A DNA stretch of 5,333 nucleotides from Amoeboradix gromovi X-113. Lineage: Eukaryota > Fungi > Sanchytriomycota. This document shows, piece by piece, positions 3 through 5,333 of this stretch (within the stretch, counting starts at the first letter, position 1; the number at the start of each line of letters is the position of its first letter). The stretch lies in the NCBI GenBank assembly GCA_018985225.1, contig JADGIF010000671.1, positions 1 to 5,333 on the forward strand, written 5' to 3'. The position numbers were made by a program, and so were the translations under genes. Under the pieces are notes generated by a model, which had not been told where the DNA came from, did not search any database, and was given only the letters and a program-made list of their open reading frames with translations.

Positions 3-257
3 AAAGAAATAGACAAGAGTAATGATGCTAGTATAACATTACAAAACGACTCTAGAAAAGAGTACCGTCTAAGAAAATGCACCTTTTGCTTAGATGCTCA
101 ACGACCTTGCATACTTGAAAGAGATAGTGGGTCGTCTTGTTATATTTTAAAAAGAGGAATACAATCAATGAAAGAAAATTGGTATAATAGAAGAAGATCT
201 TTTATTAATGATAGCATTTCCTCCGCATGGTGCACCTTTAAAAACGAGTTAGTCTAG
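3..257 (+). CDS. C-terminal 84 codons of a transposon-encoded protein, open from the window edge; putative divergent TnpB/Fanzor-family nuclease (Zn-finger CxxC plus RuvC-III-like motif)
   Basis: Frame +3 reads KEIDKSNDASITLQNDSRKEYRLRKCTFCLDAQRPCILERDSGSSCYILKRGIQSMKENWYNRRRSFINDSISSAWCTFKNELV* (TAG 255..257). CTFC (78..89) followed by ERDSGSSCYILKRG (117..158) parallels the TnpB/Fanzor pattern CxxC...xRDxNAAxNILxxG. Against copy 2, 9 codons differ synonymously, 8 non-synonymously, and the indels are frame-preserving, which supports coding status. The family call rests on motif resemblance only. Confidence 0.55.
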   Translation, partial: KEIDKSNDASITLQNDSRKEYRLRKCTFCLDAQRPCILERDSGSSCYILKRGIQSMKENWYNRRRSFINDSISSAWCTFKNELV

Positions 258-276
258 TTTTTATATTTGGTGTCCC
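153..276 (+). ncRNA. Candidate omegaRNA-like scaffold overlapping the 3' end of the putative Fanzor ORF (copy 1)
   Basis: Hand-folded stems: GAGGAAT (154..160) with ATTTCCTC (216..223); hairpin TAATAGAAGA-aga-TCTTTTATTA (185..207); terminal hairpin GGTGCACC (229..236) with GGTGTCCC (269..276) enclosing TAAAAAC with GTTTTTA. Equivalent pairings are kept in copy 2. The position at the element right end matches TnpB/Fanzor omegaRNAs. No expression evidence. Confidence 0.3.
247..276. repeat. Right terminal inverted repeat of copy 1 (30 bp)
   Basis: Identical to 4898..4927; reverse complement of 4433..4462 with one mismatch. Confidence 0.93.
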
Positions 277-2035: not shown

Positions 2036-4102
2036 TTATTTTTTTTGCCTCTTGTTCTTTTCTAACGCCATCTGATAGTCATTCTCATTGATGTCTACAT
2101 CTAGCCAAGATTCATCTTCCATTTGCCTCTTGTTCTTTTGAAGTGCCATCTGATAGTCGTTTTCATTGATGTCTACATCTAGCCAAGATTCTTCTGCATT
2201 TTTAACATTTTCCATCGCAATCTTTTGTGCCCGAATTAAATCGTTTTCATTTACTTCCACGTCCAACCAATCGTCTTCTTCGTTGGTCACTAAGTTTTGA
2301 ATGGTCTCCGAATTGCTAAAATTTAATTTACTCTGCCCTGGTATTAATTTAGGCACTTTAGGTATCTTTTCAGCTTTTAATTCATTTACAATTCCTGTGT
2401 ACTCTGCATCGACTTTTGACCTTTTGCCATCCATGCACTGGCTCACAATATTTTGTTTCCTGTTCAACAAGTTCCAGAGCTGCTTGTCAATTGTACCTTT
2501 ACCGATCAACACAATTGATTCTACTTGATTAAGTTGCCCTATTCGGTGACATCTATCCTCAGCTTGTGCCATGTCACTCCAAGACCATGTCATTTCCCCA
2601 AACACAACATGAGATGCTTTAGTAAGTGTGAGACCAGTGTTACATGCTTTAATACTTAACAAAGCAATTGGAATTGTAGAATCGTTTTGAAACTTGTCAA
2701 CGAGAGCTTGCCTCTTATCGGTTTTAGTATCACCATCAATAAGAATATAATCAGTATTGAGAAATTGGCAGAAGGACTCAATTTCTCTTAACATGGCTTG
2801 ATGGTGGCAAAAGAATAATATACCGTTTACAGGACACGTCACTCCTTCAACAGGGAAGTCATTGCACTCGTTGTAAACCTCTATCAGCTCTTGTAAATAG
2901 TCCTTAACAAATTGTACCTTTGCCAAACTTGTAGCACGATATAGTTGCAACCACAACTTATTTAAATCACCTTTGTTTGCCATTGCATCTTTAATAACTT
3001 CATCTTCTGACTGCTTCTTACTCTTAGACTTCATTTGGTCTAAAATAGTAGTACAGGTTTGAAGTAAAAGTGGATCTATTTCTCTGATCACACAAGTTCT
3101 GTTTTTAGCTTCTAACTCAAGTAAATCATCCTTTGTGCGGCGGATCATTACATCCCTAAGAACATAATACAACTCATCCTCATTTTTGCTGCCAGTATAT
3201 ATCTTGGTACTGTAGCCGGCGGGATTTCTAAACTCACGAACATACGCGTAACGGGTAGCAAACTGGTTCTTGTCTTTAATGTAATCTGGTCTACATATGT
3301 TCAATTGAGTAAAGAGTTCCTCAATCTTTCCAGTTATTGGCGTCCCGCTTATTAAAATAGTGTATTCGCAGTGCCTCAAGATAACTTTCATTCCTTTGTA
3401 TCTAATGGTACCATTATTCTTTACGCTGTGGGCTTCATCCAGAATACCAAATTTAAATTTCTTCAAAAACTTGCTAGAATTGCGGGCACTTAAGTCCACG
3501 GTGGCTAAAATAATCTTCTTCATGCCCAGTTTAAGATCTGGTAGTATTTTGTCTAAGTCAGTGCCTTTTCTTATCTTTAGTATATTTTGCTGTCCGATAT
3601 TAGTCCATTTCATTACTTCATTGTACCAATTATCTAACAATGACGCTGGAGTGCTTATTAGTACTGGCCATTTATCCAACAAGCAAATGCTAGCAATTGT
3701 TTGAATAGTCTTTCCAAGACCCATGTCATCACTCAGCATAATCTTTTTAGATTGCAAAAGACATTTGCAGGTTAGCCATTGGAAATTATGAACATTTTTA
3801 GGATTTTTTAGCAAATGCAAAATGTTTTCATTCTGCTGAAAGTTCAATTCCTCCTGTAAAGACACGTTTCTTGGCAAAGGCTTGCATTTCTCAAATTGCA
3901 CAGGCAACCTTTCTATTTTGAAGTTAGCGTTATTAAAAAACTTGGGATACTGATCAACTCCAGTTTTGTACAACTTCAGACTGTGGTCATATTTGCAGAG
4001 CTTTTGGATTTCATGGATATACTTCTTGTTTATTATTTCAATGCCCAGGTAGAACGCTTGGTCTTTTTGAATAACTTTGAGCCTCACATCAACGGATGAC
4101 AT
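2036..4102 (-). CDS. SMARCAL1: SMARCAL1/HARP (ZRANB3-related) SNF2-family annealing helicase / fork-remodelling ATPase, about 688 aa
   Basis: SNF2 motifs with SMARCAL1-subfamily flavour: SDDMGLGKTIQ (Walker A), WPVLISTPASL, DEAH, ILISGTP, MIRRTK, FCHHQAML, IDGDT, ALLSIKACNTGLTLT, QAEDRCHRIGQ. The N-terminal EIQKLCKYDHSLKLYKTGVDQY resembles a single degenerate HARP repeat. No ZRANB3-type HNH or NZF domain is visible. The ORF track starts at a TTG (4126); the first ATG is 4102. Confidence 0.85.
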   Translation of the reverse strand: MSSVDVRLKVIQKDQAFYLGIEIINKKYIHEIQKLCKYDHSLKLYKTGVDQYPKFFNNANFKIERLPVQFEKCKPLPRNVSLQEELNFQQNENILHLLKNPKNVHNFQWLTCKCLLQSKKIMLSDDMGLGKTIQTIASICLLDKWPVLISTPASLLDNWYNEVMKWTNIGQQNILKIRKGTDLDKILPDLKLGMKKIILATVDLSARNSSKFLKKFKFGILDEAHSVKNNGTIRYKGMKVILRHCEYTILISGTPITGKIEELFTQLNICRPDYIKDKNQFATRYAYVREFRNPAGYSTKIYTGSKNEDELYYVLRDVMIRRTKDDLLELEAKNRTCVIREIDPLLLQTCTTILDQMKSKSKKQSEDEVIKDAMANKGDLNKLWLQLYRATSLAKVQFVKDYLQELIEVYNECNDFPVEGVTCPVNGILFFCHHQAMLREIESFCQFLNTDYILIDGDTKTDKRQALVDKFQNDSTIPIALLSIKACNTGLTLTKASHVVFGEMTWSWSDMAQAEDRCHRIGQLNQVESIVLIGKGTIDKQLWNLLNRKQNIVSQCMDGKRSKVDAEYTGIVNELKAEKIPKVPKLIPGQSKLNFSNSETIQNLVTNEEDDWLDVEVNENDLIRAQKIAMENVKNAEESWLDVDINENDYQMALQKNKRQMEDESWLDVDINENDYQMALEKNKRQKK
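2044..2280 (-). repeat. Coding tandem repeat in the helicase C-terminal tail (78-bp / 26-aa period)
   Basis: 2044..2113 and 2122..2191 are near-identical (ESWLDVDINENDYQMAL[Q/E]KNKRQ); a third degenerate unit EEDDWLDVEVNEND lies at about 2240..2280. Confidence 0.92.
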
Positions 4103-4432
4103 GAATTTAAAACGTGCGGGAACCAATTTTTAATTTCATTACAAAAAAATTACCAGTAACGAATGCTATCCTCAAGAAAAAGTCCTGGTTTAATAGGAAA
4201 TTAAGGATTCCACAGAAACACAGACTCAAAGGCGAGATTGAATAAGGATGCATTTAGTATATTTTCCTTGCTAATATACGGTCTCTATTTGCTTCCAAAT
4301 GACATTTTGAATTAACACACAACCCGAAATTGGTTTTCTTTAGAGTGAACCTTTTCTACATTTGACTAGAGAACGATTCATTTAATTCTGCCAATGCCTT
4401 TCATATTTCTTACACTTTAGTATTAAGCATTG

Positions 4433-4462
4433 GGGACATCAAATATAAAAACTAGACTAACT
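4433..4462. repeat. Left terminal inverted repeat of copy 2 (30 bp), preceded by TSD ATTG (4429..4432)
   Basis: Reverse complement of 4898..4927 except T4439 versus G4921. Confidence 0.93.
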
Positions 4463-4471
4463 TTCTGTAAC

Positions 4472-4508
4472 AACTTGGAACATTATTCAAACTTGGAACA
4501 TTATTCAA
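4472..4508. repeat. Perfect 18-bp tandem duplication, subterminal to the left TIR
   Basis: AACTTGGAACATTATTCA at 4472..4489 and again at 4490..4507. Confidence 0.9.
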
Positions 4509-4641
4509 GAGGCGAGTGGACATTCAGCTAGTTGCGGAGTTGACGAGTATAAAAGGAAAATAAATAACTTTTTGTATCGAAATTTCAAAAATAAATATTC
4601 TGTACAGCTATTCTCTTACTCTTTCATCCAATCTTTACTTC

Positions 4642-4908
4642 AAATAAAATATCACTATTATAGACAAGAGTAATGATGTTAGTATAACATTACAAAATGA
4701 CTCTAGAAAAGAGTACCGTCTAAGAAAATGCACCTTTTGCTTAGATGCTCAAAGACCTCATATATTTGAAAGAGATGCAGGGTCTTCTAGTTTTATTTTG
4801 AAAAGAGGAATACAATCAATGAAAGAGAATTGGTATAATAAAAGATCTTTTATTAATGACAGTATATCCTCTGTATGGTGCACCTCCTTTAAAAACGAGT
4901 TAGTCTAG
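4642..4908 (+). pseudogene. Truncated remnant of the transposon ORF (putative TnpB/Fanzor C-terminus) in copy 2
   Basis: K*NITIIDKSNDVSITLQNDSRKEYRLRKCTFCLDAQRPHIFERDAGSSSFILKRGIQSMKENWYNKRSFINDSISSVWCTSFKNELV* (TAG 4906..4908). The in-frame TAA at 4645..4647 corresponds to GAA (6..8) in copy 1. The element is too short to hold a full nuclease. Confidence 0.6.
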
Positions 4909-4927
4909 TTTTTATATTTGGTGTCCC
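4804..4927 (+). ncRNA. Candidate omegaRNA-like scaffold (copy 2)
   Basis: AGAGGAATAC (4804..4813) pairs with GTATATCCTCT (4862..4872) with one bulge. It encloses TCAAT/ATTGG (4816..4833) and the perfect palindrome TAATAAAAGATCTTTTATTA (4836..4855). A terminal hairpin GGTGCACC...TAAAAAC/GTTTTTA...GGTGTCCC runs to 4927. Hand folding only. Confidence 0.3.
4898..4927. repeat. Right terminal inverted repeat of copy 2 (30 bp), followed by TSD ATTG (4928..4931)
   Basis: Identical to 247..276. Confidence 0.93.
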
Positions 4928-5333
4928 ATTGCTATAATGAATGACGTTATCTGCTTCCTGGTGTCGAAAAGCATCAAATATTGCCATTTAAATAAAGACT
5001 TTTGTATCGCTTAGGGATTTCTTTAGCTTTAAAATATTTTCGCTACCATTATATGCAGGCATTTGCCATAAATGAGAAAAAATGAATGTCCAATTTTTTC
5101 TCAATATGAAAATTAGAGAAAGACCACTGGTTAGAAAGATAAAATTCATGTCATCTTGAAAAATGATGAATTCAATTAAAACGAAGTCCTATTATTTCAG
5201 CTTAACTAATAACACTGCCAACTTCACTCATACGGTGGATCTATCAAGGGAACCACTAGGTTACCCATTATCATTAATTCATCATACCCAACACAACAAA
5301 GAAACAAAAAGAGCAAAAAAAGACGATAATGAC

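Follow-up and report, generated by a model that had tools for sequence, protein, structure and literature searches.

The window, i.e. the whole 5,333-nt stretch of DNA analysed here (contig JADGIF010000671.1 of Amoeboradix gromovi X-113, assembly GCA_018985225.1), contains two host genes, a PRP3 splicing-factor homologue (546-1754, +) and an SNF2-family helicase gene (2036-4126, -). Both lie between two copies of a short inverted-repeat element, hereafter called ghosts, which occupy the short adjoining spacers. At the 3' end of the helicase gene, three tandem units of 78-84 nt (2033-2284) encode repeated acidic WLDVD(I/V)NEND.. segments at the C-terminus of the protein. Flanked by the helicase gene on one side and immediately to the left of the second ghost lies a decayed relic of another, unrelated ghost family, here named family A (4170-4395, -), which reads ..ELNESFSSQ..CHLEANRDRILARKIY.. 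with stops and matches a family A copy by tblastn (E 9e-13). The features belonging to the two ghosts are:

1-276, +: ghost copy 1, of which the 3' part is present and the left part is lost at the contig start; at least 40 other copies match it at 89-94 % identity
1-19, +: junction of a 22-nt deletion, from comparison with the longer copy L016
3-257, +: relic open frame, read from its sequence as a Fanzor1 C-terminus; 84 codons plus TAG at 255-257
78-89, +: second CxxC (CTFC) of the zinc ribbon, aligned to the second Cys pair of the intact relatives P0003, P0004 and P0005
120-125, +: Arg-Asp of the RuvC-III motif (ERDSGSSCYILKRG), aligned to ERDxGSxxYI of the intact relatives and, via profile A4, to the RD of SpuFz1
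228-277, +: predicted terminal hairpin in which the last codons pair with the right repeat (fold z-score -3.0); candidate 3' part of a guide-RNA scaffold
247-276, +: right terminal inverted repeat of copy 1, from comparison of the repeat arms, an end shared by 30/30 copies and the genome-wide core count
277-280, +: right flank AAGT of copy 1, fitting the A-N-N-T target-duplication pattern of the flank logo; its left counterpart is off the contig
4428-4432, +: C, then the left target duplication ATTG, which occurs again at 4928-4931
4433-4927, +: ghost copy 2, complete at 495 bp; its inverted repeats span 4433-4462 and 4898-4927
4660-4908, +: open frame of copy 2, a relic of 82 codons and a stop that lacks a start codon
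4928-4931, +: right target duplication ATTG of copy 2, from flank comparison

Translation of copy 1 gives YRLRKCTFC and, nine residues later, ERDSGSSCYILKRG, and the corresponding motif of copy 2 (4660-4905) reads ERDAGSSSFILKRG, exactly as the original prediction had described. The ERD of copy 1 (nt 117-125), nine residues past CTFC, aligns with the ERD of P0003, P0004 and P0005. Likewise, the stop codon does lie 19 nt short of the end of the inverted repeat, whose 30-nt arms in the window (247-276, 4433-4462 and 4898-4927) are 97 % complementary. The frame was also said to enter from the window edge: it is indeed open to the edge, but this is due solely to a break of the contig within the repeat. 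The 84-codon frame of copy 1 has no start codon. The RuvC-I Asp is missing from both window copies because it has been deleted, and a rearranged RuvC-II is likewise absent from them. Of the zinc ribbon, copy 1 retains the second CxxC only, since the 22-nt deletion at nt 1-19 removed the first Cys pair (KCSVCENE) and the HTSKK strand and shifted the frame upstream. The upstream reading ‘VHRLHFKE’ was rejected as protein: the copies that keep these 22 nt, absent from most others, read ...YTSKKCSVCENEIDKSND..., and therefore the usual reading is an out-of-frame product of the deletion. In copy 2, which has both inverted repeats and no Fanzor gene, the 5' untranslated part is fused straight to ..IDKSND. 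An exact 18-nt tandem duplication in the left part of copy 2 (4472-4507) is missing in the other aligned copies.

Profile scans of the window frames themselves were uninformative, i.e. Pfam and NCBIfam gave chance hits only for these frames and for relic frames of 100-138 aa, and neither window frame reached the gathering score of PF07282, with no match to that family. Ten places in the genome share still more sequence upstream than the usual ghost copies, and PF07282 (Cas12f1-like TNB) was the top Pfam hit for 5/6 of these longer relics of the same repeat, at 16-25 bits (best L016 with 25.4 and L094 with 24.3); all longer relics fall below the cut-off of 26.3 bits. With the L094 relic as query, phmmer returned no solved structure.

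The RuvC-I, RuvC-II and first zinc-finger half, absent from the window copies, are present in these longer relics. GIDPGVK (RuvC-I) was found in L094 and L101. Within the open 291-aa stretch of L094, ILFWGDGQF places a Gly at the canonical TnpB RuvC-II Glu position, VELVDEYHTSKMCSVC holds an alternative Glu and the first Cys pair, and CTFC provides the second Cys pair; L016 runs on into ERDAGSSSFILKRG. Between them, L094 and L016 show GIDPGVK, WGDG, the alternative Glu in LVDEYHTSKKCSVC, a CxxC...CxxC ribbon and ERD, and both contain the full zinc-ribbon motif DEYHTSKKCSVC...CTFC. In the relics of the family, WGDG is followed about 40 residues on by the alternative Glu in LVDEYHTSK, i.e. a rearranged RuvC-II. 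As judged from their sequences, L094 and L016 fit the motif reported for Fanzor/TnpB proteins, D-X(125,275)-[TS][TS]-X-X-C4 zinc finger-X(5,50)-RD (Bao and Jurka, PMC3627910), as well as the rearranged catalytic site of Fanzor1, in which Gly/Pro stands in place of the RuvC-II Glu and an alternative Glu follows some 45 residues later (Jiang et al. 2023, PMC10530073).

Intact relatives were retrieved with a profile built from twelve natural fragments (A2) and searched against 1.84 billion proteins. One match, P0001, is the same ORF as in L094 and is listed in EukProt under Amoeboradix gromovi; three others are intact proteins, i.e. P0003 (616 aa, E 7e-49), P0004 (585 aa) and P0005 (642 aa), with E-values ranging from 7e-49 to 2e-38. 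BLASTP of the copy 1 relic frame against P0003 gave E 4e-12, and a six-frame genome search with P0003 reached window nt 60-173 (E 2.7e-7). The three intact proteins have the tail YRLRxC..C...P.F.ERDxGS(A/S)x(Y/F)I..RG in common, and therefore the ‘divergent’ RuvC-III motif is a conserved trait of the clade and not the result of decay. Weaker, Fanzor1-like matches of the same profile (P0012, P0014, P0024 and P0025) pass PF07282 at 32-44 bits. A further relative, the 728-aa P0013 (L107:36-3424), has the tail DRDAIGSMNI and lies directly after an IS4-like DDE_Tnp_1 transposase gene, and thus its Fanzor1 branch also rides IS4-type elements.

The AlphaFold model of P0003 (33 sequences; pLDDT 81, pTM 0.81) was compared with known structures by Foldseek. 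SpuFz1, PpFz1 and GtFz1 came first (E 1.6e-14 to 1.1e-12, TM 0.5-0.6), with SpuFz1 the best at E 1.6e-14, and Cas12 variants and Fanzor2 trailed at 1e-4 or weaker. A profile of close relatives searched against solved structures gave weak Cas12f matches only (E 0.03), while a wider profile, A4, matched SpuFz1 (8gkh) at 1e-38 and Fanzor2 at 6.5e-12. In the A4 alignment, SpuFz1 shows RDMLSTCNM at the RuvC-III motif, so that a non-canonical NAAxN is ordinary for Fanzor1. According to the model, the whole-protein fold of this intact relative fits solved Fanzor1 better than Fanzor2 or Cas12. The proposed alignment of the R-D and I-L-x-R-G positions with RuvC-III is thus supported by the intact relatives and profile A4, as is the family call (Fanzor/TnpB), the clade here being Fanzor1. 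Window positions 3-257 are therefore best described, from sequence, as the C-terminal relic of a Fanzor1 protein comprising the second zinc-ribbon half and the RuvC-III Arg-Asp, an assignment reached through a chain of longer relics and intact relatives.

Another organism harbours an intact parent-type element of 2.07 kb, whose right end is nearly identical. This element, L106, lies on a 2342-nt contig of GCA_013565655.1, measures 2071 bp and contains a single ORF encoding the 642-aa P0005. Its right repeat is 28/29 identical to that of the ghost family and its left repeat 22/29, and its stop codon falls at the same place within the right repeat (...LV, stop); protein identity to the ghost family is only about 40 % over the aligned C-terminal parts. 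The right end recurs at five further sites of that assembly; the flanks there are ATTT, ATAT, AATT and ACAT, and CAAA at a site common to two loci. L106 adjoins a reading frame that resembles, in our own reading, the C-terminus of histone H3. An extreme miniature of an L106-type element was seen in the same organism at L111:2110-2182 (JACCDR01), a unit of around 70 nt with little beyond two back-to-back inverted repeats. The P0003 locus, AT-rich and packed with small genes, resembles giant-virus DNA but bears no repeats that match those of the ghosts; viral contigs yielded neither an exact match to the repeat nor any relative of P0003.

In the Amoeboradix genome, the window segment 1-280 matches at least 40 places at 89-94 % identity (949 first-look candidates). 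A sharp right end, ...TGTCCC (...GGTGTCCC followed by A), was common to all 30 copies fetched, and in most copies the left repeat lies 460-730 nt upstream of it. The repeat core gave 1498 hits in the 10.5-Mb genome (771 forward, 727 reverse) and the reversed control pattern none, a frequency far above chance and corresponding to about 750 elements, or roughly 3.5 % of the assembly. Many contig ends fall inside ghost repeats, as does that of the window contig. Aligned copies differ through nested internal deletions, and searches upstream with internal segments recovered only further deletion variants. ORFs of 295-434 aa upstream of some copies were rejected as the family gene, being unrelated flanking genes; one open frame of 295 aa (L039:464-1348), which has no Pfam match, continues into the left end of a ghost.

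The flanks of the oriented copies show a marked pattern. On the left, C at -5 (31/34), A at -4 (32/34) and T at -1 (27/34) predominate; on the right, CCC is followed by A in 51/52 copies and T stands at +3 in 39/52, with G at +4 in only 21/52. The constraint is one-sided (C at -5 vs G at +4, P 1.4e-6), and in the flank of copy 2 the conserved CA corresponds to C4428 and A4429. A 4-bp A-N-N-T duplication is perfect in 8/25 copies compared with 9.7 % of shuffled pairs (P 0.002) and imperfect in the other 17, with at least two mismatches in 15/25. Among these 25 complete copies (loci L002-L089), the duplications fall into two classes, either perfect (8) or with two (10) or three (5) mismatches, and few have one (2), a pattern that may reflect recombination among copies or a mode of copying in which the target is not duplicated.

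No coding constraint is apparent in the relic frame. Substitution rates by codon position are evenly spread (0.083, 0.077 and 0.094), and the frame is kept in 22/56 copies, the remaining 34 carrying frameshifts or stops. The relic frame thus decays neutrally across the ghost family.

The second, unrelated ghost family found in the window is also widespread in this genome (e.g. L053:1393-1842, L054 and L059). There were 560 first-look PF07282 candidates, all 150 scored candidates lay above the PF07282 cut-off with up to 74 bits, and the family A tail reads ECNESFTSQTCTRCG...DRDHMAARNIY. From its sequence, family A looks Fanzor2-like and resembles an IS607-type gene in L066, by our own comparison of the two sequences. 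This locus holds an intact 671-aa TnpB/Fanzor2-like ORF (L066:1417-3432, -) with NF040570 (119.7 bits, over the cut-off), PF07282 (67 bits) and HTH_OrfB_IS605 matches, overlapped in another frame by a 171-aa resolvase-domain ORF (L066:2711-3226, -). L067 contains a similar pair with one stop.

Returning to the two ghosts of the window, we consider it highly probable (about 0.9) that positions 1-276 and 4433-4927 are miniature, internally deleted derivatives of an inverted-repeat transposon of around 2.1 kb with Fanzor1 as its sole gene. The parent gene would have reached into the right inverted repeat and terminated there at its stop codon. Through deletions it would then have lost its middle, while the 5' leader, in some cases around 45 N-terminal codons, and the final 85-100 codons were spared, so that the open frame would be a non-functional relic with half a zinc ribbon and the RuvC-III Asp, devoid of start codon, RuvC-I and RuvC-II. 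Since the 4-bp duplication is AWWT-like, as is characteristic of Fanzor1 elements of Sola2 type (Bao and Jurka 2013, PMC3627910), the ghosts were probably mobilised in trans by a Sola2-type cut-and-paste transposase. The right end, comprising the gene tail and the repeat, may encode a guide-RNA scaffold, the guide being the DNA just past the right end; the conserved CA left of the left end would then match the target-adjacent motif of the nuclease, and the whole would run as in the ghost loci of Spizellomyces punctatus.

Other explanations of the open frame were weighed against the deleted Fanzor1 transposon. Inverted repeats, a 4-bp duplication and a CxxC near the C-terminus at a transposon end would also be expected if the frame were the zinc-finger tail of a piggyBac-like DDE transposase and the small elements ordinary MITEs of that transposon. 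The longer relics and intact relatives, however, have no DDE domain; what they show is RuvC-I, a rearranged RuvC-II and a zinc ribbon of TnpB type. The P0003 model matches only Fanzor1 structures and Cas12/TnpB, and the termini are of the form GGG...CCC, flanked by an A-N-N-T duplication, rather than CCC...GGG flanked by TTAA. Such a transposase tail, one of the outcomes that would have told against the original prediction, is therefore extremely improbable. Nor do the two window copies look like a small functional protein, i.e. a domesticated zinc-ribbon peptide retained from the 84-codon frame. The frame is open in both, and the two in-frame indels of copy 2 are multiples of three; yet the missing start codon, the even substitutions across codon positions and the disrupted frames of most other copies leave this with hardly any credibility.

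That a full-length gene might lie just upstream of the window had been proposed as well, and an intact, active Fanzor1 gene running on upstream would agree with a contig that starts inside copy 1, a frame open to the edge and the many contigs that break in repeats. Nonetheless, nt 1-19 are the junction of a 22-nt deletion typical of the ghosts, at which KCSVCENE is gone and the frame is shifted; most of the roughly 750 copies measure 460-730 bp; copy 2 is complete at 495 bp, with no room for such a gene; and the frame decays neutrally across the family. In addition, the six-frame genome search found no full-length open frame of the ghost family, the best stretches being 273-436 aa. We therefore regard an intact upstream gene as very unlikely, and no working nuclease gene is present within, or directly upstream of, the window. 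The same genome does hold open frames of 693 and 748 aa, at G000:C363:1568-2113 and G000:C1184:5144-5614 respectively, which are 28-33 % identical to P0003 and may be intact Fanzor1 genes of other lineages.

Elements of this kind are already known, i.e. the Spizellomyces ghost loci and the Sola2-type Fanzor1 elements, and the Amoeboradix family is a further member. In S. punctatus, 134 ghost loci are bounded by inverted repeats of 30 nt, and a CA is conserved ahead of the 5' repeat (Saito 2023, PMC10432273); Bao and Jurka (2013, PMC3627910) described Sola2-type Fanzor1 elements with AWWT duplications. Like the Spu-1 ghosts (PMC10432273), those of Amoeboradix are short (around 550 nt there and 480 nt here), carry 30-nt inverted repeats homologous to those around a single-ORF Fanzor1 element of about 2.1 kb, lack the Fanzor gene, show the conserved CA left of the left repeat and reside in a chytrid-like fungus; L106 in turn shares the single-ORF, transposase-less architecture of Spu-1 (PMC10432273). 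In contrast to Spu-1, the Amoeboradix copies still contain a recognisable stretch of Fanzor coding sequence, owing to the overlap of the gene with the right repeat. They also number about 750 in 10.5 Mb rather than 134, and no intact cognate gene was found in the Amoeboradix assembly. Expression and guide function have been demonstrated for the Spu-1 ghosts; in those of Amoeboradix they are putative.

The DFa-1/2/3 and PPa-1/4/5 elements of dictyostelids (PMC3627910) likewise have a Fanzor1 passenger at one end, inverted repeats, AT-rich 4-bp duplications (AWWT) and derivatives that lost the transposase. Their repeats, however, measure 12-21 nt rather than 30 nt, and the Amoeboradix elements are far smaller and far more numerous. 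With SpuFz1, GtFz1 and PpFz1 (PDB 8gkh, 9cer and 9cf0), P0003 shares the same predicted overall fold, a rearranged RuvC-II (a Gly at the canonical position and the Glu in the DE-x-TSK strand), the zinc ribbon and the RD. The sequences are nevertheless no more than 10-13 % identical, the tail here has the motif ERDxGS(S/A)x(Y/F)ILKRG, and the window carries only the last 84 residues. A looser parallel is offered by the non-autonomous derivatives of IS200/IS605 (PATEs), which are also miniature, have kept the ends of the transposon along with the 3'-terminal part of the nuclease gene, and preserve the TnpB guide-RNA region; unlike the Amoeboradix ghosts, they are bacterial, move by single-strand ‘peel and paste’ and have neither inverted repeats nor target duplications.

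By analogy with these systems, a guide-RNA role may reasonably be proposed for the right ends of the ghosts. A right-end hairpin of around 50 nt was predicted in both window copies (z about -2 to -3), and an analogous hairpin in L106 (z -4.2) has 5'-arm sequences different from those of the ghost family. Its pairs are retained in 52-59 of 59 copies, in which all changes are one-sided and no two-sided compensatory change occurs; RNAalifold returned no consensus structure for these 59 right ends, and Rfam no match. Within the genome, the left end is as well conserved as the right. The equal conservation of the ends, the lack of compensatory changes and of an Rfam match, the modest fold z-scores (-1.7 to -3.0) and the failure to find an intact cognate nuclease would be expected if the ghosts were pure junk MITEs that make no guide RNA, their hairpin being a by-product of a transposase-binding sequence, and we give this an even chance or a little better. 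Speaking against it are the between-organism contrast of a nearly unchanged right repeat with a divergent left repeat and divergent proteins, the origin of the hairpin from different 5'-arm sequences, the one-sided flank constraint, and the fact that ghost guide RNAs are functional in Spizellomyces (PMC10432273). At the other extreme, the roughly 750 ghosts might form a genome-wide guide-RNA library, each combining a right-end scaffold with about 20 nt of its own flank, used in trans by the 693- or 748-aa Fanzor1 to cut empty CA-adjacent sites and so lead to ghost copying. This would, if true, explain both the one-sided CA constraint and the two-class target duplications; we regard it as an unlikely, speculative scenario.

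The identification of these relics adds the sanchytrid fungus A. gromovi to the Fanzor1 hosts, and its genome represents a very dense case of ghost Fanzor elements. With hundreds of insertion flanks, it offers a ready prediction of the target-adjacent motif, i.e. CA followed by the 4-bp duplication, while P0005, whose element has an almost identical right end, could serve as the enzyme in tests of this motif and of the use of ghost right ends as guide RNAs in trans. Finally, the ghost family explains the recurring short, conserved CxxC/RD open frames in the gene spacers of this genome, as well as the breaks in the assembly at these places.
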